Shown here in pieces: positions 1 through 28,120 of a stretch of 64,000 nt of DNA. Under the pieces are notes generated by a model. That model had not been told where the DNA came from, did not search any database, and saw only the letters and a list, made by a program, of their open reading frames with translations. The stretch comes from Isurus oxyrinchus. Its lineage: Eukaryota. The position numbers were made by a program, and so were the translations under genes. Position 1 is the first letter of the stretch; every line of letters starts with the position of its first letter. Where the stretch lies: contig JANJGN010000071.1 of the NCBI GenBank assembly GCA_026770705.1, forward strand, positions 434,001 through 498,000. Reading direction: 5' to 3'.

Positions 1-413
1 TCAGTGCTGCACTGGAGTCTTGGTATCAGCTCTGATTCTGTGTTGAAGGAAGGTAAACTCCAGATCAGCAAGACCCTGAATTGGATGGAGCAACCTCCTG
101 AACAGTGAATTGTAGATTTACCCCTCAGTGCTCCATCGATCAAATACAATTCACGGGCTTTCAATCCCTTGGGGGCATCTTGAGAGTGTTAAAGGATGTT
201 TGTTTCATTCTAGGTGGACAGCAACTCTGCTGGTGGGAGAATGCAACTGCAGTGTGACAGTTTACATAGGAAGTGCCCATTATAAATGTGACAGTATTTT
301 TTCCTGAGGGAAGGTACCTGGAAATGCATTCCAACATCAGATACAGAGAGATGATGCATGGAGTCTTGCTGTGCATGCTGCTTGCTCACATTAAAATCTT
401 TATTTGTTTTTAG

Positions 414-695
414 ATGCCCCACAGAATCTCTCAATTACTTCTCTTGATATGATTAACGCTTCATCGATCAATATAATTGAGGAGAATTCTGCAGTGATAA
501 TCTGCTCTGTCGAGAGCTTCCCAGCTTCTAACCTGACGTGGCGACATCTTAATGTCCCAATGAACAGAACAAGTTCCAACAATGAGCTGTGGTTGGTGAT
601 TCCTCACGTTACATCCAGGGACACTGGAGACTATCAGTGTGTGGCAGAGAATGAACATGGAGCAGTGGAGGGGTTCATAACCATCACTGTGGAAT
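414..695 (+). CDS. Gene A (inhibitory Siglec/CD22-like receptor): C2/I-type Ig exon, copy 1
   Basis: ttttag|AT...GAA T|gtgag; 282 nt, phase 1-1; DAPQNLSI...IICSVESFPASNLTW...DTGDYQCVAENEHG...ITVE has the canonical C-W-DxGxYxC Ig pattern. Confidence 0.92.
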
Positions 696-1534
696 GTGAG
701 TTAACGNNNNNNNNNNNNNNNNNNNNNNNNNNNNNNNNNNNNNNNNNNNNNNNNNNNNNNNNNNNNNNNNNNNNNNNNNNNNNNNNNNNNNNNNNNNNNN
801 NNNNNNNNNNNNNNNNNNNNNNNNNNNNNNNNNNNNNNNNNNNNNCACATTTACACACACAGTCATACACGTGCAAAAACATACACAGAAACACACATAC
901 ACTCAACTCACACGCACACACTCACACAGGCACACATATAGACATACACATGCACTCACGTTCACTCATGCACAGACGTATACACAAAGACACACAAACA
1001 TATGCAAAACACATACACACACGCACACACAGACACATGCGTGCATACACACACAAACACACTCACTTGTGCAGAAACACAAACACACACATACGCACGC
1101 ATGAGGTCCCTCTCCTCTCTCAGGGCTGCACTGGAGTCTTGGTATCAGCTCCGATTCTGTCTTGAAGGAAGGTAAACTCCAGATCAACAAGATCCTGAAT
1201 TGGATGGAGCAACCTTCTGAACAGAGAATTGTAGGTTTGCCCCTCAGAGCTCCATCGATCAAATGCAATTCATTGCCTGTCAAGCCCTTGGCAAAATCCT
1301 GAGGATGTGCAAGGAAGTTTCTTTCATTCTAGGTGGACAGCGCCTCTACTGGTGGGAGAATGTAACTGTAGTTTGACTGTTTACATAGGCAGTGCCCATT
1401 ATAAATTTGACAGTGGAAGTTATATGGAGGGAAGGTATCTGGAAATGCATACAGACATCAGATACAGAGAGATGATGCATGGAGTCTTGCTGTGCACGCT
1501 GCTTGCTCACATTAAAATCTTTATTTGTTTTTAG

Positions 1535-1816
1535 ATGCTCCACAGAATCTCTCAATTAATTCTCTTGATATGATTAATGCTTCATCGATCAATATAATTG
1601 AGCGGAATTCTGCAGAGATAATCTGCTCTGTCGAGAGCTTCCCAGCTTCTAACCTGACGTGGCGACATCTTAATGTCCCAATGAACAGAACAGGTTCCAA
1701 CAATGAGCTGTGGTTGGTGATTCCTCACGTTACATCCAGGGACACTGGAGACTATCAGTGTGTGGCAGAGAATGAACATGGAGCAGTGGAGGGGTTCCTA
1801 ACCATCACTGTGGAAC
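1535..1816 (+). CDS. Gene A: C2/I-type Ig exon, copy 2
   Basis: ttttag|ATGCTCC...GAA C|gtgag; 282 nt, open frame, near-identical to copy 1. Confidence 0.92.
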
Positions 1817-2806
1817 GTGAGTTAACACAAACTTCAACATTACTCTCACATACACACACACACACACACACACACATACACACACACACACAGACACGTG
1901 CACACAAACAAGCATTCATGTGCAATCCCACATGTGCACAGGTGTGTACACCTGCATGCTCACACACACAGAAGGAAACATACACAGAATCACACGTGTG
2001 CTTGCTCACACACACACAGACATGTGTGAGTTGTCTCTTCTCCCTGTGCTGCACTGGAGTGTTGCTCCAGATTCTGCTCTGAAACACTGACGACATCAGC
2101 TGAACAAGACCCTGTATTGGACGAGCAGCCCCCTGCACAGAGAATTGTAGGTTTATCACTCAATACCCCATTATTCTAAAGCAATTCCTCCGCTGTCAAA
2201 TCCCTGTGAACATCCTGATGATGTGAAAGACATTTTCTTTTCTTCTAGCCCGACAGTGTCTCCTCTGGTGGAAGGCTGTAATTACAGTGTGACAGTTTAC
2301 ATATCCACATGCAGCAAGAGCTGAATAACACTCAGCTTGGGCTGAGAAATGACAATTAATGCATCACAAGTACCAGGCAGTGATCATGTCCAACAAGAGA
2401 GAATCTAACCATCTCCCCTTGATGTTCAGTGAGTTTACTATCACTGAATCCCCCACAATCAACATCCTGGGGGATGTTAACCAAACAACTATCTGGACCG
2501 GCCATAAATACTGTGGCTACAGGAGCCGGTCAGAGGCTGGGAATTCTGTGGGGGTGAAAAACTCACCACCACCTCCTCAAGGGCAATTAGGGATGGGTAA
2601 TAAATGCTGGTCTAGATAGATACAGCCACTTCCCATGAATGTACAAAAAGAAAAACACCAGCAGTGACCATTATAAAAGTTGACATAGGAACTTAAAACA
2701 GGACAGAAACCTTGAAATGCACATAGACACCAAATAGAGAGAGATGTATCATGGAGTCTTGCTGTGCACTGTGTTTGCTCACAATGATACCTTTATTTGT
2801 ATTTAG

Positions 2807-3088
2807 ATGCACCACGGAACCCATCAATTACTTCTCTTGATATGATTAACGCTTCATCGATCAATATAATTGAGGGGAATTCTGCAGTGATAATCTGCTC
2901 TGTCGAGAGCTTCCCAGCTTCTAACCTGACGTGGCGACATCTTAATGTCCCAATGAACAGAACAAGTTCCAACAATGAGCTGTGGTTGGTGATTCCTCAC
3001 GTTACATCCAGGGACACTGGAGACTATCAGTGTGTGGCAGAGAATGAACATGGAGCAGTGGAGGGGTTCATAACCATCACTGTGGAAC
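2807..3088 (+). CDS. Gene A: C2/I-type Ig exon, copy 3
   Basis: atttag|ATGCACC...GAA C|gtgag; 282 nt, open frame. Confidence 0.92.
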
Positions 3089-3121
3089 GTGAGTTACTGC
3101 AAACTTCAACATCACTCAGAT

Positions 3122-3158
<37 letters not shown>

Positions 3159-3859
3159 CACACACACACGTGTAGGCACACACATGCACACTTATACACA
3201 CACAGTCATACACGTGCAAACACATACAGAGGAATATATATACACAACTCACACACACACACACATTCATGCCCACACATAGACACACACATGCACATTC
3301 ACTCACTCTTGGACAGACGTAGACACACAGTCATGCGTGCATGCGCACACACAGATACATGTGTGCATACACACACAAGCACACTCACTTCTGCAGAAAC
3401 ACAAACACACACACACTCACACACATACACAAATGTGAGTTCCCTCTCCTCTCTCAGGGTGCACTGGAGTCTCGGTATCAGCTCTGATTCTGTGTTGAAG
3501 GAAGGTAAACTCCAGATCAACAAGACCCTGAATTGGATGAGCAACCTCCTGAACAGAGAATGGTAGATTTACCCCTCAGTGCTCCATCAATCAAACATTG
3601 CCTGTCAAGCCCTTGGCGAAATCCTGAGGATATGAAAGCAAGCTTCTTTCATTCTAGATGGACAACACCTCTACTGGTGGGAGAATGCAATTGCAGTGTG
3701 ACAGTTTACATAGGCAGTGTCCATTAAAAATGTGGCATTAGACCTTATCCTGAGGGAAGTTACCTGGAAATGCATTCAGACATCAGATACAGAGACATGA
3801 TGCATGGAGTCTTGCTGTGCACTATGTTTGCTCACGTTAAAATCTTTATATGTTTTTAG

Positions 3860-4141
3860 ATGCACCATGGAATCTCTCAGTCAATTCTCTTGATATGATT
3901 AACGCTTCATGGATCAATACAATTGAGGGGAATTCTGCAGTGATAATCTGCTCTGTCGAGAGCTTCCCAGCTTCTAACCTGACGTGGCGACATCTTAATG
4001 TCCCAATGAACAGAACCAGTTCCAACAATGAGCTGTGGTTGGTGATTCCTCACGTTACATCCAGGGACACTGGAGACTATCAGTGTGTGGCAGAGAATGA
4101 ACATGGAGCAGTGGAGGAGTTCATAACCATCACTGTGGAAC
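3860..4141 (+). CDS. Gene A: C2/I-type Ig exon, copy 4
   Basis: ttttag|ATGCACC...GAA C|gtgag; 282 nt, open frame, a few private substitutions (PWNLS, NASW, VEEF). Confidence 0.9.
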
Positions 4142-4847
4142 GTGAGTTACANNNNNNNNNNNNNNNNNNNNNNNNNNNNNNNNNNNNNNNNNNNNNNNNN
4201 NNNNNNNNNNNNNNNNNNNNNNNNNNNNNNNNNNNNNNNNNNNNNNNNNNNNNNNNNNNNNNNNNNNNNNNNNNNNNNNNNNNNNNNNNNNNNNNNNNNN
4301 NNNNNNNNNNNNNNNNNNNNNAATCCCACATGTGCACAGGTGTGCATGCTCACACACACAGAAGGAAACATACACAGAATCACACGTGTGCTTGCTCACA
4401 CACACACACAGACATGTGTGAGTTGTCTGTTCTCCCTGTGCTGCACAGGAGTGTTGCTGCAGATTCTGCTCTGAAACACTGACGACATCAGCTGAACAAG
4501 ACCCTGTATTGGACGAGCAGCCCCCTGCACAGAGAATTGTAGGTTTATCACTCAATACCCCATTATTCTAAAGCAATTCCTCCACTGTCAAATCCCTGTG
4601 AACATCCTGATGATGTGAAAGACATTTTCTTTTCTTCTAGCACAACAGTGTCTCCTCTGGTGGAAGGCTGTAATTACAGCGTGACAGTTTACATATCCAC
4701 ATGCAGCAAGAGCTGAACAACACTCAGCTTGGGCTGAGAAATGACAATTAATGTTCATGCCGCACAAGTACCAGGGAGAGCTGTTCCTTGTATTGACCCT
4801 TGGGATTGTTTATCCCAACCTGATAGGGCAGAGGGGGCCCAGGTTGT

Positions 4848-4914
4848 GACTATCAGTGTGTGGCAGAGAATGAACATGGAGCAGTGGAGGGGTTCATAAC
4901 CATCACTGTGGAAT
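4848..4914 (+). pseudogene. Gene A: 5'-truncated fifth C2 exon remnant (DYQCVAENEHGAVEGFITITVE)
   Basis: Matches the 3' end of the C2 exons including the donor GT, but the first ~215 nt are replaced by unrelated sequence. Confidence 0.8.
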
Positions 4915-5732
4915 GTGAGTGTGGAGAAATATTTGTTTGTTTGTTGTCTCCGTGGTCTCCGTGGAGCCATTGGGATCGTGTTGTTTTTAATCCAGTTTTC
5001 TTCAATCCTCGCTCAGTCCACGTTATCCACACACCCAATTTTTCCTCTCCCTTTCTGTTTTTGCTCTCAGTTTCTCCTTCAATGGTTGTGAGGACAAGGC
5101 TGTCAGGTCTTCGTTTCCAATCTCCGTACTTGACGACCTTTCTCTCTCTAACTGTCCTGAACTACCCTTTTAATTGCTGAACTTCTCATTCTTTAATTGA
5201 TAAATATTATATATAAATGTTACATGGATTACTTTGAAATGCAACACCTGTATTCATAAATTGCTTAGAAATGACTAAACATTCAACAGCCAATGAAGCA
5301 TTATCGAAGTAAGCTCACTGTTGTAAAGGAGGAAACACAGGTACTGATGTGTACACAGCAAGATCCCACAAACCACCGGGTCTTAATGACCTGATAGGCG
5401 ATTATTTCAATGAGGTTGGTTTTTTAATGTGTAGAGAGACTACATACCCTTTAGGGAGGGAAGCATGTCTCGATGTGGATGTGACTCCAGTCTCAGACAC
5501 CATCATGGTTAAATCACATCTGCCCTCTGAACTGCTCTCCCAGTTTGGGACAAACCAGTGGTTCAGGAGGAAGACCCCCCACCACCTTCTCAAGGGGAAA
5601 CTAGGGATGGACAATAAATGTCAGCATTGCCGAGAATGAATATTTAAACACTGAGTGAGTGTATCGCTTCTCGAGATACATCGGAGCATCATTGTAAACC
5701 TGTAGTGCAGTAATTAATGGCTGTTTTTACAG

Positions 5733-8296: not shown

Positions 8297-10372
8297 AAGG
8301 TGAGGTGAGAGTGACTGCCTTTGACATCAAGGCTGCATTTGACCGAGTGTGGCATCTAGGAGCCCGAGTAAAACTGGAGTCAATGGGAATCAGGGGTGGT
8401 ACGAAAGTATAATAATTTGCTTAATATTTTCCTGGTTTGTTGTAAACTAGGTTTATGGGTGTGAGTGTAGATGGGTCTGTCTGTGTAGTTTAATTACATC
8501 TGGAGACAGGTAGACTGCAAGTTTGAGATTATCAAAAGAAGCTAGGTGTAGAAATGTACTTGAAATGCTAATGAGAACACATGGAGGCTGCCTTAGCATG
8601 TAAGGTGTGAAGGGGCTGTTTAGATTTCAAAGGGATGTTGGTCTGTTTAGGACAAGCCCAATAAGCAAAGCTAAGGAGTTTTTTTTAAATTTTACCCAAA
8701 CTTCATTGACAATATTGGCAACATGAAAGTTTATATTATGGGAAAGGTACAGTTCCAAAGAATTTACACATCAAAGAGAGAGAAACATGTATAAAGGAGA
8801 ATGAAAGGCTATGTTGGGGGCCATGTAAGATCTAACAGGAGTGTGTGAAACAGGCTTGAAGAAGCCTCCAGGCATTTGTGCATAAGTCTGTTATGTTCAG
8901 TAAATAAAGTTGGAGAAACCCATTTAGAATTCCAGGGTCAAGTGTGTGCTGTGTTAACTCGCTGGGTTTGTTTTTAATCTAAAATCTTATTTTGGACTGT
9001 TGCCTTAAAAGGGGTATGTAACTGGGAGTCAGGTTAATTAGGAATTTGAGAATATATTTTAGCTGTAACTAACCGTGGTATTATGTCTGTGCTTGAAATC
9101 TTTTATTTTGTTAATAAATATCTTAATTGAATTTTTAAAATCTCTAAAGGTTGTGGTCAACTCATTACTCCTGAATTCAGTGCACGCTTCTTGTAATAAA
9201 TACAAATTGCAAAACTATTGTGATAGCGTGACCAATTTTCCCTTGTGGATTTGGAGCACCAAGCACACATCATCTGCCATGTCATGTCACAGGGAAAACT
9301 CTCCACTCGTTGGATTCATACCCAGCACAAAGGAAGGTGGTTGTGGTTGTTGGAGGTCAGTCATCTCAGTTCCAGGACATCACTGCAGGAGTTGCTCAGT
9401 GCAGTGTCCTAGGCCCAACCATCTTCAGCTGCTTCATCAATGACATTCATTCTATCAGATGGTCAGAATTATGGAAGGTCGCTGATGATTGCACAACGTT
9501 CAACATCATTCATGACTCATCAGATGCTGAAGCAGTCCATGTCCAAATGCAGCAAGACCTGGACAATATCCAGGCTTGGCCTGACAAGTGGCAAGTAACA
9601 TTCATGCCACACAAGTGCCAGACAATGACCATCTCCAACCAGAGAGATTATATCCATCTCCCCTTAATGTCCAATAGCATCACCATTGCTGAATCCCACA
9701 CTATCAACACTCTGGGGGTTACCAATGACTAGAAACTGAACTGGACTAGCCATATAAACACTGTGACTATAAGAGCAGGCCAGAGCCTGGGAATCCTGTG
9801 GTGAGTAACTCACCTCCTGACTCCCCAAAGCCTGTCCACCAACCTCAAGGCACAGGTCAGAAGTGATGGAATACTCTCCACTTTCCTAGATGAGTGCAGC
9901 TCCAACAACACTCAAGAAGCTCGACACCGTCCAGGACAAAGCAGCCCCGCTTGATTTGCGGCCCGTCCACAAACATTCTCTCCCTCTACAACTGACGCAC
10001 AGTGGCAGCAGTGTGTGTACCATCTACAAGATGCAATGCAGTGAGTCACCAAGCCTCCTTAGACAGCACCTTCCAAACACATGATCACTACCATCTCGAA
10101 GGACAAGGGCAGCAGACACATGGGAACACCACCACCTGGAAGTTCCCCTCCAAGTCACTTACCATCCTGACTTGGAAATATATCACCGTTCCTTCACTGT
10201 CGCTGGGTCAGAATCCTGCACCACCCTCCCAAACAGTTCTGTGGGTGTACATACACCACAGGGACTGCAGCAGCTCAAGAAGGCAGCTCACCCCCATATT
10301 CTCAAGGACAATTAGGGATGGGCAATAAATTCTGGCCTCGCCAGTGTCAGTGAATGAATACAAAAAAGAAGC
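8297..10372 (+). mobile_element. Degenerate CR1-group LINE (RT and 3' tail) interrupted by a solo LTR
   Basis: DIKAAFDRVWH, SVLGPTIFSCFIND and ADDCT RT motifs; continuity across 8396/9292 is shown by the uninterrupted copy near 30460-30500. Confidence 0.85.
8397..9291 (+). mobile_element. Solo LTR nested in the LINE
   Basis: TG...CA ends, internal AATAAA, splits a LINE; same family as 43633-44558. Confidence 0.7.
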
Positions 10373-16499: not shown

Positions 16500-16960
16500 T
16501 CCCCCACAAGGGGTAACATCCCCTCAGCATCCACCCTGTCAAACCCCCCACCACCTCAGAATCTTATATGTTTCAATAAGATCACCTCTCATTCTTCTAA
16601 ACTCCAATGGATACAGGGCCCAACCTGCTCAACATTTCCTCATAAGACAAACCCCCTTCATCCCAGGAATCAGCCCAGTGATCCTCCTCTGAGCTGCCTC
16701 CAATGCAGAGTCTATCCCTCCCTAAGTAAGGAGACCAGAACTGTACACACTGCTCCTGATACAATCTCACCAACGCCCTGTGCAGCTGTTGCAAGACTTC
16801 CCTCCTTTTATACTCCATCCCTTTGCAATAAAGGCCAACATTCCACTTGCCTTCCTCATTCCGTGCTGTTTTTGAATGCTGACTTTCTGTGATTCATGTA
16901 CAAGGACACCCAGATCCCTTTGTTCCGCATTCTGCTGCCTCTCTCCATTGAAGTAATATT
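16500..16960 (-). mobile_element. CR1 LINE fragment
   Basis: MEYKRREVLQQLHRALVR...CVQFWSPYL on the - strand. Confidence 0.8.
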
Positions 16961-17001
16961 CTGCTTTTTGATGTCCTGTCTCTTCCCTTGTTGCCTTTCA
17001 G

Positions 17002-17303
17002 GAGTGACGTCAGAGGGATGGTCTATGAAGGCGCTGCCTCGGAGGGCCATCAGCAGCTCTTGTGTGGTTATTCCGTGTAGCTTTGACTTTCCTTCCCACT
17101 CTTACACAGCACTGCACGGAGCTTGGTATAAATATTGGTATAGATGGAAATATACCATCACATACACCAAAGATCCCAACTATGGGATGGCCACATTCGT
17201 GGGACGTGCTAAAATAATCGCCGACTTGGAAGGGAAGAATTGTTTGGTGAGGATTGACAGTCTCAGAGCTGAAGACAGTGACGTGTATTGCACCCAATTC
17301 TAA
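17002..17303 (+). pseudogene. Gene B: MAG/sialoadhesin-like V-set exon truncated by a Gypsy element
   Basis: cctttcag|GA GTG ACG; WSMK...SCVVIPCSFDFP...LHGAWY...FVGRAKIIADLEGKNCLVRIDSLRAEDSDVY, then gag-derived CTQF*; F-strand Arg, G strand and donor are missing. Confidence 0.85.
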
Positions 17304-21979: not shown

Positions 21980-22195
21980 TGTTGCGTCAATATGAACACA
22001 TATTTGCACAAGGTGAAGGGCGTTGCGGAGGGACTGATAGTTCTCGGCGCCAGACAGTCAATGTCCCAGTGACCTTACTGCTGGTCCCAGGCCAGTGGGA
22101 CAGGGAACATCAACACTGCAATATCCAGAAATGGGTGTGATACCACACAGCTACCCACCCGCGGCTGTCCCCTTCAAGTGTTTCAGGTATAAGAG
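21980..22195 (+). promoter_or_regulatory. hamp: Hepcidin proximal promoter: C/EBP-like sites, BMP-responsive element, TATA box
   Basis: TTGCGTCAA 21982-21990, TTGCACAA 22004-22011, GGCGCC 22046-22051 abutting CAGAC (SMAD box), degenerate STAT-like TATCCAGAA 22122-22130, TATAAGA 22188-22194 about 75 nt before the ATG. Confidence 0.7.
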
Positions 22196-22264
22196 CAGGA
22201 AGCTCCTCTAGTTACAAACCAAAGCATCAAAGCAGAGCCAGAAGATCAGAAGAGACAGGCAGAG

Positions 22265-22356
22265 ATGGGAAGCTCCCAGATGAAATGGCGACTTGTCTTG
22301 TTCACTCTGACTTTGCTGCTCTCCCTGCAGCTGAGTCACTTCTTCTCCTTGTCGAG
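22265..22356 (+). CDS. hamp: Hepcidin-like exon 1 (signal peptide), apparent 1-nt deletion near 22340
   Basis: MGSSQMKWRLVLFTLTLLLSLQLSH then, after a frame shift, LLLVE|gttaag; 92 nt from the ATG to the donor where 93 are needed for a phase-0 join to exon 2. Confidence 0.75.
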
Positions 22357-22554
22357 GTTAAGCTAAGAGATGTCCCTCTGGGTGAGGTGTTTCTTGCACA
22401 TGACTCTACGTCTACCACCCAGATAGACTGGTCTCTTCCGCAGTTTGATATTATGTTCGTGCCTTTAATATTGTCGCCCTCTATGAATTTAACATCATTT
22501 CCTTCTGTCATTTCCCCTGAAATTCTCATTCTTGTTTTCAATCCCTCCTCAGCG

Positions 22555-23890
22555 ACTCCCTATCTCTGTAACCTCCTCCAGCCCGTACAACCCTCCCTAT
22601 CTCTGTAAACTCCTCCAGCCCCTACAACCCTCCCTATCTCTGTAACCTCCACCAGGCCTTACAACCCTCCCTATCTCGGTAACCTCTTCCAGCCCCTACA
22701 CCCCTCCCTATCTCTGTAACCTCCTCCAGCCCCTACAACCCTCCCTATCTCTGTAACCTCCTCCAGCCCCTACAACCCTCCCTATTTCTGTAACTTCCTC
22801 CAGCCCCTACAACCCTCCCTATCTCTGTAACCTCCTCCAGCCCGTACAGCCCTCCCTATCTCTGTAACCTCCTCCAGCCCCTACAACCCTCCCTATCTCT
22901 GTAACCTCCACCAGCCCCTACAACCCTCCCTATCTCTGTAACATCCTCCAGCCCCTACAACAATCCCTATCTCTGTAACATCCTACAGTCTCTACAACCC
23001 TCCCTATCTCTGTAACCTCCTCCAGTCCCTATAACCCTCCCTATCTCTGTAACCTCCTCCAGATCCGACAACCCTCCCTATCTATGTAACCTCCTACAGT
23101 CCCCACAACACTCCCTATCTCTGTAACCTCCCCCAGGCCCCACAACCCTCACGATCACTGTAACCTCCTCCAGACCCTACAACCCTCCCTATCTCTGTAA
23201 CCTGCTCCAGACCCTGCAACCCTCCCTATCTCTGTAACCTGCTCCAGACACTACAACCCTCCCTATCTCTGTAACCTGCTCCAGACCCTACAACCCTCCC
23301 TATCTCTGTAAAGTCCTCCAGGCCCCACAACCCTCACAATCACTGTAACCTCCTCCAGCCCCTACAATCCTCCTGAACTCTATAACCTCCTCTCCACACT
23401 ATAACTCTCCCTATCTCTGTAACCTACCGTGGCCCCTACAGCAGTGTCTATTTTGGTAACCTCCTCCAGCCTCTACAACCCTCCCTACATCTGTAACCTC
23501 CTCCAGCCCCCACAACCACCCCATCTCTGCAACCTCCTACAGCCCCTACACACCTCCCTACCTCTGTAACCTCCTCCAGCCCCCACAACTCCCCCATCTC
23601 TGTAACGTCCTACAGCCTCGACAACCCTCCCTATCTCTGTAACTTCCTACAGCCCTTACAACCCTCCCTATCTCTGTAACCTCCTACAGCCTCTACAGCC
23701 CTCCCTATTTCTGTAACCTCTTCCAGCCCCTACAACCCTCCCTATCTCTGTAAACTCCTACAGCCTCTACAACCCTCCCTATCTCTGTAACTTCCTACAG
23801 CCCTTACAACCCTCCCTTTCTCTGTAACCTCCTACAGCCTCTACAGCCCTCCCTATCTCTGTAACCTCCTCCAGCACCCACAACCCTACC
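22555..23890. repeat. 37-bp L2-derived minisatellite in hepcidin intron 1
   Basis: About 35 units of tctctgtaacctcctccagcccctacaaccctcccta. Confidence 0.95.
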
Positions 23891-23904
23891 TAAATCACTG
23901 GTCT

Positions 23905-24510
23905 GAGTCTCACTCCAGGGAATTCAGTCCCATAATGTAGATCAACGCTCCGTGCTGAGGGAGTGCTGCAATCTCAGAGGGTCAGTAGTGTGGAAGTGTT
24001 GCACTATTGGAGGGACAGTACTGAGGGAGTGCTATACTGTCGGAGGTCAGTACTGAGGGAGTGCTGCAGTGTCAAAGGGTTAGTACTGAGGGAGCGCTGC
24101 ACTGACGGAGGGACAATACTGTGGGAGTGCAGCACTATCGAAGGGTTAGTACTGAGGGAGTGCTGCAGTGTCAAAGGGTTAGTACTGAGGGAGCGCAACA
24201 ATGTTGAATGAGACATTAAACCGAGTCCCCCGTCTGCCCTCTCGGGCGGGTGTGAAAGATCCCACAGCCACTATTTGGAGGAAGAGCAGGGGGTGTTCTC
24301 CCCGGTGTCCTGGGACCAATATTTATCCCTCACCCAACATCACCAAAAACAGATGATCTAGGCCATGATCACATTGCTATTTGTGGGATCTTGCTGTGCA
24401 CAAATCAGCTGCCACATTTCCTACAGTGTGAGTGCACTTCAAAAACATCCTTCAGTGGCTGTGAAATGCTTTGGGATGTGGTGAAAGGCGTTAGAGAAAT
24501 GCAAGTCTGT
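23905..24510 (+). mobile_element. DeuSINE (SacSINE1/AmnSINE1-like) with internal 33-bp expansion
   Basis: atgagacattaaaccgagtcccccgtctgccc...gaagagcagggg...ttgctgtgcacaaat...gtgaaaggcg...aaatgcaagtct resembles the Deu-domain body; tandem 33-mers at 23955-24195. Confidence 0.75.
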
Positions 24511-24607
24511 CCTCCTCCCCCTCTCTCTCCTGTACCTCTCTCTCTCTCTCTCCCTCTCCCTCAATCCTCCTCTCACTTTCTCCCTGATAAATTCTTTCTT
24601 TTTGCAG

Positions 24608-24664
24608 GTTGACACTGCTTTAGGTTCTTCGACGATTGAGAAATCTGTGGATTCCCCGGACACG
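24608..24664 (+). CDS. hamp: Hepcidin-like exon 2 (pro-region VDTALGSSTIEKSVDSPDT)
   Basis: Strong polypyrimidine acceptor ttctttctttttgcag and donor ACG|gtaggt; 57 nt, phase 0-0, similar in size to vertebrate HAMP exon 2. Confidence 0.8.
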
Positions 24665-26184
24665 GTAGGTGGAAATTCATTCCTTATTTTAAGGTTTCTC
24701 CCTGCTCGTTTCTTCCACAGAAAGTTTTCTGATTTCAATGGCAGTCTGTCTCGGTTATACTCAGGAGGCAGGTTTGAAATCGAGCACCCCCCACCCTTTT
24801 TTTGCAAAGCTGGGAAGAGGCAATTCCAAGGAAGTGAACATATCCCCACAGGAATTTTAAATGTAACCCACGCCGGGAATAGTGAGAGGGAGACTGATCC
24901 AGCCTGGGAGTGGGTTAAAGAGAGGCTGGGAGTCGAGAGTCGGAGAGAGGGATGGAATGGGGGAGGGAGGGATTGGAAGAGAGAGACAGAGAGTGGGACG
25001 GGGAGGGGTGAAAGGGAAAGAACATAGGTGGGAGAGAGTGACAGAGGGAGAAATTTAAGAGATGCAGAGTGAGGGAAAGTGAAAAGAGAAGAGAGATTGT
25101 CCAAGAGAGAGAAATTAACAGGAAAGGGAGAGTTACAGAGTGAGCGAAAGGTACAAAAATAGTGTGAGAGAGAGGGAGAGATACAGAGTGGGAGAAGGAG
25201 ACAGGGGAGAGAGAGGGAGAGAGACAGGAAAAGGGAGAGAGGAGAGAAAGATTGGGAGAGAGGGCAATTGAGCGGAAGAGTAGGAGAGAGAGAGACAGGG
25301 AGAGGAGGAGTGGAAGAGAGGAAGAGAGAGAGAGATATGGAGCAGGAGAACACCTCCTCCGGTCCCGATGTTCCTCCAAAATCTCTGACATTACTGCATC
25401 TCCCGGGTCCCCCTGATTCCCATCGCTCCACCATTGGTGGCCGTGCCTTCAGCTGCCTGGGGCCCTGAGCTCCGGAATACCCTCCCTTAACCTCTCTGCC
25501 TCTCTCTCTCTCTCTCCTTTAAGACGCTCCTTAAAAACTGACATCTTTGACCAAGCTTTTGGTCACCTAACCCTAATATCTCCATATGTGACTCAGTGTT
25601 AGACTTCTCTCTGATTTACGCTCCAGTAATGTGGGCTGGGACATTTTGCAATGCCAGAGGCGCTGTGTAAATGCAAGTTGTGAGTGTTATGTGGAAGGGA
25701 GATCCCAGGCGGCAGTCAGTGCCAGAGACTGGAGTCATTGTGCGCAGACCGTATCTCATCTCTCTGAATGCACAATCGGTTTGACTGTCAGCCAAAGCAC
25801 TTTTGATATTTGATCCTTCTAACTGTTTATAACCAGGCCTACATCAAACACCGAGAGGCTGGTTAATCAACAGACACCTTAGAGGATCGAGTGAAAGACA
25901 AAGAGGACTTGCATTTCTCTAGCGCCTTCCAACACATCAGGACGTCCCAAAGTGTTTCGCAGACAATCAAGTGCTTTTTTCTTTCATGTGAGGTCACTGA
26001 TGTAATGTGGGAAAAGAATCATCCATTGGCGCACAGTAAGATCCCACAGACAGCAGCATGATAATGACCAGCGCGCTCCCAGTACTTGCACTGCAAGTGT
26101 CAGTTCAGGGTGTCTGCTCGATTCTCTGCGACTCTCAGCTCTGAGTTAAAAGGACCACCAGGCGTAATTGAGGAATGACCGAGC

Positions 26185-26890
26185 TATCGGAGGGTCAGTA
26201 TTGAGGGTGTGCTGCATTGTCAGAGGGTCAGTACTGAGGGAGTGCTGCATTGTCAGAGGGTTAGTACTGAGGGAGTGCTGCATTGTCAGAGGGTCAGTCT
26301 TGAGGGAGTGTTGCACTGTCGAAGGGTCAGTACCGGCGGGGGGATGCACAGTCGGAGGGTCAGTACTGAGGGAGTGTTGCATTGTCAGAGGGTCAGTCTT
26401 GAGGGAGTGCTGCACTGTTGGAGGGTCAGTACTGAGGATGTGCTGCATTGTCAGAGTCAGTACTGAGGGAGTGCTGCACAGTCGGAGGGTCAGTACTGAG
26501 GGGGTGCTGCACTGTTGAAGGCGCTGTCTTTCAGATGAGATGTTAAACTGAGACAACATCTGCCCTCTCAGGTGGATATAGAGGATTCCATGGCCACAAT
26601 TTAAATGAAGTGCGTCAGGAGTTGGGTGTATGTGTGGAGGGGGTGGTGGGGGCTGGATGGGTGGAGTTATGTCCGCTTTCCTGGGGCAAACATTTATCCC
26701 TCAACTGACATTGGTAAAAAACTGAAAATCGGGGCCATTATCACATTTCTGTTTGTGGGATCTTGCTGTGCATGAATTGCCTGCTGCGTTTCCTACATTA
26801 CAGCGGTGAGCCCACTTCAGAAAAAGTCCTTCCTTCAGCTGTGGAACACTTTGGGCCATCCTGAGGAGGGGAAAGGCGCTATAGAAATGC
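26185..26890 (+). mobile_element. DeuSINE with internal 33-bp expansion (hepcidin intron 2)
   Basis: 33-mer array 26185-26515 runs directly into gtctttcagatgagatgttaaac...gaaaggcgctatagaaatgc. Confidence 0.75.
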
Positions 26891-26979
26891 GCCATCCTCC
26901 TTCCAATGACGCGCCTGATTGAAATGATGCCTTCTTTCTTTCCGGAATGTTCTCACCTATTGTGCTCCTGCTTTTCCAG

Positions 26980-27096
26980 GGCTCCTTGCTGCAGCGCCAG
27001 AAGAGAATGGGCAGACAGCAGCGCTGCAGATTCTGCTGTAACTGCTGTAATTGGAGAGAATCAAATGAGACTTGTGGTCTCTGCTGTAGATATTAG
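26980..27096 (+). CDS. hamp: Hepcidin-like exon 3 (furin site and mature 8-Cys peptide)
   Basis: cttttccag|GGC...; GSLLQRQKR^MGRQQRCRFCCNCCNWRESNETCGLCCRY*; the C-x2-CC-x-CC-xn-CG-x-CC pattern after RxKR is diagnostic of hepcidin. Confidence 0.95.
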   Translation, partial: GSLLQRQKRMGRQQRCRFCCNCCNWRESNETCGLCCRY

Positions 27097-27424
27097 ACCC
27101 TGGCCTCATTCACGCAAGGTCATCCTGCACCATGCCACAGCCTCTCCCCTCCTTATCATTGCTTAGCAATCTATTTCACACAGGCCCTGTTCATTAATTC
27201 CAACTGAAACTTTACCTGCGTTTTACAGCAGGGAAAGAAGCCATTCGGCCCATCTGCTCCATGCTGGTGTTTCTGCTCCACACGAGTCTCCGCCCACCCC
27301 TTCTCCATCTCACCCCATCACCATATCCTTCTATTCATTTCTCCCTCGTGTGTTTATCCAGCTTCCCCTTAAATACATCGACACTATTCACCTCACGTGA
27401 CTGTGTTTGTGTCTGTCTTTATGA

Positions 27425-27905
27425 GCGTGTGTGTGTGTGTGTGTGACTGTCAATATGTGTGTGTCAATGTGAATGAGTGAGTGTGTCAGTGTGTCTGTGT
27501 GGGTGTGTGTGACTGTCAGTGTGTGTCAATGTGAATGAGTGAGTGTGTCAGTGTGTCTGTGTGGGTGTGTGTGACTGTGTCAGTGTGTGTCAATGTGAAT
27601 GAGTGAGTGTGTCAGTGTGTCTGTGTGGGTGTGTGTGACTGTGTCAGTGTGTGTCAATGTGAATGAGTGAGTGTGTCAGTGTGTCTGTGTGGGTGTGTGT
27701 GACTGTGTCAGTGTGTGTCAATGTGAATGAGTGAGTGTGTCAGTGTGTCTGTGTGGGTGTGTGTGACTGTGTCAGTGTGTGTCAATGTGAATGAGTGAGT
27801 GTGTCAGTGTGTCTGTGTGGGTGTGTGTGACTGTGTCAGTGTGTGTCAATGTGAATGAGTGAGTGTGTCAGTGTGTCTGTGTGGGTGTGGGTGTGTGAGT
27901 GTGCA
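27425..27905. repeat. ~64-bp GT-rich minisatellite
   Basis: About 7 near-perfect units of gtgtcagtgtgtgtcaatgtgaatgagtgagtgtgtcagtgtgtctgtgtgggtgtgtgtgact. Confidence 0.9.
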
Positions 27906-28114: not shown

Positions 28115-28120
28115 AATAAA
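28115..28120 (+). other. Candidate hepcidin polyadenylation signal AATAAA
   Basis: First AATAAA I found downstream of the stop, in AT-rich unique sequence after the repeat-interrupted 3' UTR. Confidence 0.45.

Follow-up and report, generated by a model that had tools for sequence, protein, structure and literature searches.

A three-exon hepcidin-family gene copy with a one-base gap in its frame, close to Siglec-like exons of Isurus oxyrinchus

Results

Structure of the hepcidin-family locus

The window analysed here, a stretch of 64,000 nucleotides of the Isurus oxyrinchus genome (assembly GCA_026770705.1, contig JANJGN010000071.1, positions 434,001 to 498,000 of the forward strand), contains at positions 22265-27096 of its own numbering a genuine three-exon gene copy of the hepcidin family. 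Contigs of public sequencing runs prove that this type of gene is real and very strongly expressed. The copy in the window lacks a single G compared with the mRNA, and on balance we favour a recent loss of that base, which would make the copy a young pseudogene. Contigs of four public runs were placed on 22100-27420, and all depths given are word depths; runs X1 and X2 belong to a single sample of one study, are small contig sets and were taken to be RNA by guess, and X14 is a DNA run.

A preliminary description made from the letters of the window had proposed a signal-peptide exon, a 57-nt phase 0 exon and a terminal exon with RQKR and a cysteine-rich segment behind a TATA promoter, and all of these were found in place. 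The features are the following.

22046-22055 (+), GGCGCCAGAC, candidate element responsive to bone morphogenetic protein (BMP), next to a SMAD box and some 140 nt 5' of the TATA box
22189-22194 (+), TATA box TATAAG, from the sequence
22220-22356 (+), exon 1, with the 5' untranslated region (start approximate) and, from the ATG at 22265, 30 codons and two further bases of the signal peptide
22357-24607 (+), intron 1, canonical GT..AG, 2251 nt, of which the RNA joints skip 2250 nt
24608-24664 (+), exon 2, 57 nt, 19 propeptide codons, open in phase 0 only
24665-26979 (+), intron 2 of 2315 nt, GT..AG, holding GA-rich tracts as well as a 33-bp minisatellite
26980-27096 (+), coding part of exon 3, with the end of the propeptide, RQKR, the mature peptide and the stop
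26995-27006 (+), RQKR site, from the translation of exon 3
27007-27093 (+), mature peptide of 29 residues directly after RQKR, with the stop codon at 27094-27096
27097 to at least 27230 (+), 3' untranslated region, RNA depth above 10^5 in X1 and X2, with a two-form variant at 27157

The coding part of exon 1 comprises 92 bases and ends in phase 2, with GTTAAG right after position 22356. Its signal peptide has a basic start containing K/R and a 12-residue hydrophobic core, with a hydropathy peak of 2.7 over LVLFTLTLLLSL. Exon 2 is bounded by an acceptor ending in TTTTGCAG on its 5' side and by the donor GTAGGT on its 3' side. The acceptor of exon 3 ends in TTTTCCAG just before 26980, and the frame behind it opens with GSLLQ and continues into RQKR. 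The cysteine pattern of this exon, C-x2-CC-x-CC-x8-CG-x-CC, has a single occurrence when all 64 kb are translated in six frames. The preliminary description had held that the cysteine-rich frame never appears among the open reading frames, which is not borne out, as an open reading frame of 49 amino acids at 26947-27096 appears with a threshold of 40 amino acids. Its statement that the introns are swollen by minisatellites proved correct, and three arrays were located (36 units of 37 bp at 22556-23892, and 33-bp units, seven at 23955-24193 and ten at 26190-26515).

Local blastn of the 64-kb window revealed neither a second hepcidin copy nor orphan exons, and the promoter and each of the exons are single-copy there. 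No AATAAA is present between exon 3 and position 28115, the sole variant signal nearby being AATACA at 27372. The 3' end of the mRNA lies at 27230 or beyond, and an interspersed repeat that starts at about 27230 inflates the RNA depth from there on.

Membership in the hepcidin family

The exons were searched one by one, and the join of the three exons was used for frame bookkeeping only. Exon 3 alone scored 30.4 bits against the Pfam Hepcidin profile PF06446 (cut-off 27 bits; E 4.8e-07; profile positions 24-52 of 53), which upholds the proposal of a hepcidin homologue, and it could be aligned to the hybrid-bass hepcidin 1S6W by way of CRFCCNCC...CG-x-CCR-aromatic. Eight cysteines in the order of the family, an RX(K/R)R site before the mature peptide and a predicted signal peptide are all present; an uninterrupted reading frame, which also belongs to a hepcidin gene, is not found in the locus as assembled.

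Other searches were less telling. A word-indexed protein search, run on a collection apparently poor in vertebrate proteins, returned no candidate for the stop-free stretch 26923-27093. Because the same search also missed teleost hepcidins that have four 5-residue words in common with the query, its blank result is uninformative on annotation or novelty. An exhaustive HMMER search of exon 3 against 1.84 billion representatives gave a single match, a cysteine-rich repeat protein of 689 amino acids (E 6e-4), the query of 38 residues being too short for a library of that size. AlphaFold2, given exon 3 as a single sequence, predicted helices at low confidence (mean predicted local distance difference test score 66.5).

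Expression and splicing

In X1 and X2, the bins of the three exons reached depths of 6x10^4 to 6x10^5, with 6x10^4 to 2x10^5 over exon 1 and 7.6x10^4 to 1.6x10^5 over exon 2. The intron bins of these runs mostly lay between tens and a few thousand, those full of repeats being higher. Over the TATA region (22190-22202) the depth was about 30-fold (X1) and about 10-fold (X2) below that of the exon 1 bin, in keeping with transcription that starts just 3' of the TATA box.

The spliced transcripts that the proposed gene structure called for were found, as both introns are bridged in the RNA-like contigs of X1 and X2. In the case of intron 2, five contigs of X1 and eight of X2 join 24664 to 26980 and skip exactly 2315 bases, from GT to AG. 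The well-supported joints over intron 1 start at 22356 and occur in three variants, each with a net skip of 2250 bases compared with the 2251 of the canonical intron; the mRNA is therefore one G longer than the DNA of the window predicts. As the joint over intron 2 agrees exactly, the arithmetic of the tool is not the cause of this one-base offset. Across the joint of exons 1 and 2 the mRNA reads TCG AGG GTT GAC, with CGG and GGT as minor variants. With the additional G of the mRNA the exons add up to 31 + 19 + 38 = 88 codons in frame, in line with the figure of about 88 amino acids after repair given in the preliminary description; by script bookkeeping, canonical splicing of the window DNA leads to a stop at codon 36, i.e. 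after 35 codons.

These data also dispose of the notion that the cysteine-rich reading frame arose by chance and marks no gene. Only the shortness of the exons speaks for chance. On the other side stand a Pfam Hepcidin score above the cut-off and a motif that is unique within the window, together with splice sites that are used exactly and an exon depth a hundred-fold or more above that of most non-repeat intron bins. The Pfam score, taken with the splicing and depth of the RNA, refutes a chance frame, and its probability is next to nil.

A minor joint of X2 (depth 844) leads from the donor of exon 2 at 24664 to 25837, an acceptor within intron 2 that ends in ATAACCAG and is followed by GCCTAC. 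The frame stops after nine codons, and this joint looks like the use of a cryptic exon.

Several transcript forms

The RNA contigs are not uniform. The codons at the exon junction vary (AGG/CGG and GTT/GGT), and C24663T, a Thr-to-Met change in the final codon of exon 2, is found at high depth. The 3' untranslated region has two forms at 27157 (an additional T, or AT changed to TAC) of roughly equal depth. Furthermore, intronic contigs of X1, X2 and X14 agree with one another at 25625-25800 in letters that deviate from the window, and some intronic contigs of X2 are identical to the window over 24217-24525. These transcript variants point to several expressed copies or alleles, at least two, and the abundant in-frame RNA is not assignable to the copy in the window. 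In a multi-copy family, support from RNA for a gene type is no proof that one given copy is intact.

The missing G

The explanation to which we incline for the one-base offset is a true and recent loss of one base from the window copy, which would thus be a young pseudogene. Lacking one G, on the donor or on the acceptor side, at the junction of exons 1 and 2 compared with the mRNA, its canonically spliced transcript would run into a stop after 35 codons, and the abundant in-frame RNA would stem from intact sister copies. Several points weigh against such a loss. The promoter, the ATG, the four splice sites, all the cysteines and the stop are intact in the window copy, and because the rest of it is intact, an error of the assembly or variation between individuals could account for the single missing base equally well. 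An intact promoter should also yield some RNA spliced over the canonical 2251 nt; no such joint was among those listed, which is a weak point as there were 1017 further joints and contigs drop rare variants. In addition, the RNA status of X1 and X2 is guessed and a single sample stands behind them.

Followed to its end, the argument from an otherwise perfect gene, with the G gap as its sole defect, would have the copy intact and functional: the gap would be a slip of the assembly, or the donor of the RNA would differ at this point from the individual that was assembled, and the locus itself would feed the in-frame mRNA. In favour of that are the exact intronic matches of X2, which place this copy, or another identical to it, in the RNA sample, and the fact that the out-of-frame canonical joint was not among the joints listed. 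However, a run of three G is not a usual site for an assembly error. An independent contig of the DNA run X14, which spans 22100-22472, agrees with the window in the donor sequence, and none of the five gap letters that it contains falls there. We regard an intact copy as possible and well short of probable. It could also be supposed that the DNA is correct and that non-canonical splicing, or a start at the in-frame ATG at 22285, rescues the frame. The RNA joint, when laid on the window DNA, indeed runs from 22356 to 24607 or from 22357 to 24608, and the ATG at 22285, flanked by A at -3 and G at +4, shares the frame of exon 2 after canonical splicing. Yet the intron would then be GT..CA or TT..AG, neither of which combines GT with AG, and such splicing is established to be very rare; the junction codon variants, moreover, suggest ordinary coding sequence in sister copies. 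The product of the start at 22285 would not be secretable either, because it has no N-terminal segment resembling a signal peptide, its sole hydrophobic stretch (peak 2.1 as against 2.7) lying at the C-terminal end of the exon. Rescue of the frame is thus highly improbable, and a recent one-base loss remains the explanation which we prefer.

Type of the encoded peptide

The mature peptide begins with the Arg-rich MGRQQR and has a net charge of +3. Type-1 hepcidins, which regulate iron, are marked by an N-terminal Q-S/I-H-L/I-S/A-L motif (PMC8502971), and neither this motif nor one of the DTHFPI type is present. As the peptide matches the hepcidin family without the iron-regulatory motif and has the CRFCCNCC core of Hamp2, its class is type-2-like. 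The loop between the fifth and the sixth cysteine consists of eight residues, NWRESNET, and includes an N-E-T sequon, so the peptide is possibly N-glycosylated. A further minimal convertase motif (RxxR) is provided by RQQR, immediately ahead of the first cysteine, and cleavage after it could give a form of 23 residues. By analogy with the family, one would expect a secreted product that a proprotein convertase processes and that folds with four disulfides.

The sample holds yet another form. One contig of X2 runs with exon 3 as far as 27009 and continues in frame as SHLSICMYCC, which is a type-1-like N-terminus after RQKR-M. The type-1-like 30-mer taken from this loose end has no match in the window, even when three mismatches are allowed. 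As the SHLSIC contig is not encoded in the window, the sample expresses both type-1-like and type-2-like forms. A contig of X1 jumps from 27009 to 27093, as if the segment of the mature peptide alone had been replaced.

Promoter and neighbourhood

The candidate promoter element contains GGCGCC at 22046-22051, the only occurrence of this hexamer in 64 kb, and AGAC stands next to it; for the whole 10-mer, GGCGCCAGAC, 0.01 occurrences would be expected by chance. Mammalian HAMP promoters carry a BMP-responsive element, and the resemblance of the 10-mer to that element with its SMAD box may be taken as a lead rather than a result.

A Siglec-like cluster had been named as the setting of the gene, and the V-set and C2-type immunoglobulin exons found in the window agree with this. 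A V-set exon at 16896-17300 (+), 5 kb upstream of the hepcidin copy, has its best matches in sialoadhesin, MAG, Siglec-5/7/8 and CD33. Five near-identical C2-type immunoglobulin exons (Pfam Ig_3 and I-set) are arranged in tandem at 404-5180 (+), an array that looks like a tandem amplification of exons or gene segments in a Siglec/CD22-like gene. In man the gene order is USF2-HAMP-MAG-CD22. Judged by these domain matches, the Siglec-like setting is real, and it matches the linkage of human HAMP to MAG/CD22.

Behind each of the C2-type exons at 404-5180 lies a CA-rich microsatellite, and behind two of these exons also a run of N. At 9310-9729 (+) a reverse-transcriptase fragment was detected (Pfam RVT_1, 27.3 bits, slightly below the cut-off), which is part of a decayed retroelement. 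The two introns of the hepcidin copy have an interspersed element in common, about 71% alike, at 24200-24510 and 26535-26890 (+), each time beside a 33-bp minisatellite; more copies of it lie at 25906-26069 (-) and 5277-5373 (-). Directly 3' of the hepcidin region, a 64-bp minisatellite occupies 27430-27893 (+) with seven copies of 97% identity.

Discussion

The locus described here has counterparts among known hepcidins to differing degrees. With the teleost type-2 peptides (sea bass Hamp2 and the bass peptide 1S6W) it has in common the eight cysteines, an identical CRFCCNCC core and the CG-x-CC-R-aromatic end, and likewise the lack of an iron-regulatory N-terminal motif and a prepropeptide with an RX(K/R)R site (PMC5665920, PMC8502971). 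It differs from them in the loop, which has five residues in bass and eight, with N-E-T, in the window peptide, and in the Arg-rich arm MGRQQR. The resemblance to teleost Hamp2 may be independent in origin. Membership in the Pfam family, three exons, a signal peptide, a propeptide, a convertase site and Siglec neighbours connect the locus with human HAMP/hepcidin-25 and the teleost type-1 genes, whereas the window peptide does not have their N-terminus of the DTHFPI or QSHLSL type, the part that is linked to iron regulation (PMC8502971).

In cartilaginous fish, hepcidin has been detected as a protein in the plasma proteome of the nurse shark (PMC9207270). Like the gene type described here, it is an elasmobranch hepcidin, one with no annotated orthologue in the whale-shark reference proteome (PMC9207270). 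A review places the origin of hepcidin at fish (PMC8235187), and in the literature we found no study of shark hepcidin genes or types beyond the mention in the nurse-shark proteome. Hepcidin in cartilaginous fish is thus already known, and the locus in the window adds a family member with an unusually long loop.

As regards function, the features of the peptide suggest that this peptide family probably has a defence-type, type-2-like role. The preliminary description had held the gene to be informative about when the iron hormone or antimicrobial peptide arose, and thereby implied the iron hormone of the animal. The hepcidin family itself, the Siglec neighbours as in mammals, GGCGCC in the promoter and the very high expression would suit an orthologue of HAMP that acts on ferroportin as the animal's iron-regulatory hepcidin. 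This is nevertheless very unlikely, as the N-terminus MGRQQR has no type-1 motif (PMC8502971), ferroportin of sea bass is not regulated by peptides of the Hamp2 type (PMC5665920), a separate form of the SHLSIC type is expressed in the same sample and the window copy is out of frame. Nor is the claim about the origin of the hormone supported.

Genes with short exons and repeat-swollen introns are easily missed in annotation. The linkage of HAMP to Siglec genes and the three-exon layout of hepcidin are both present in the genome of Isurus oxyrinchus, and type-1-like and type-2-like hepcidins are expressed side by side in the sample, as in many teleosts. A further-reaching proposal, which we put forward as speculative and rather unlikely, is that the long-loop and possibly N-glycosylated hepcidins form a lineage-specific defence family, independent of teleost Hamp2, that was amplified many times together with the Siglec genes and is among the most abundant transcripts of the sampled tissue, the type-1-like form having kept the iron role. 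If this were true, hepcidin would have divided into hormone and defence peptide a second time, and independently, near the base of the jawed vertebrates.

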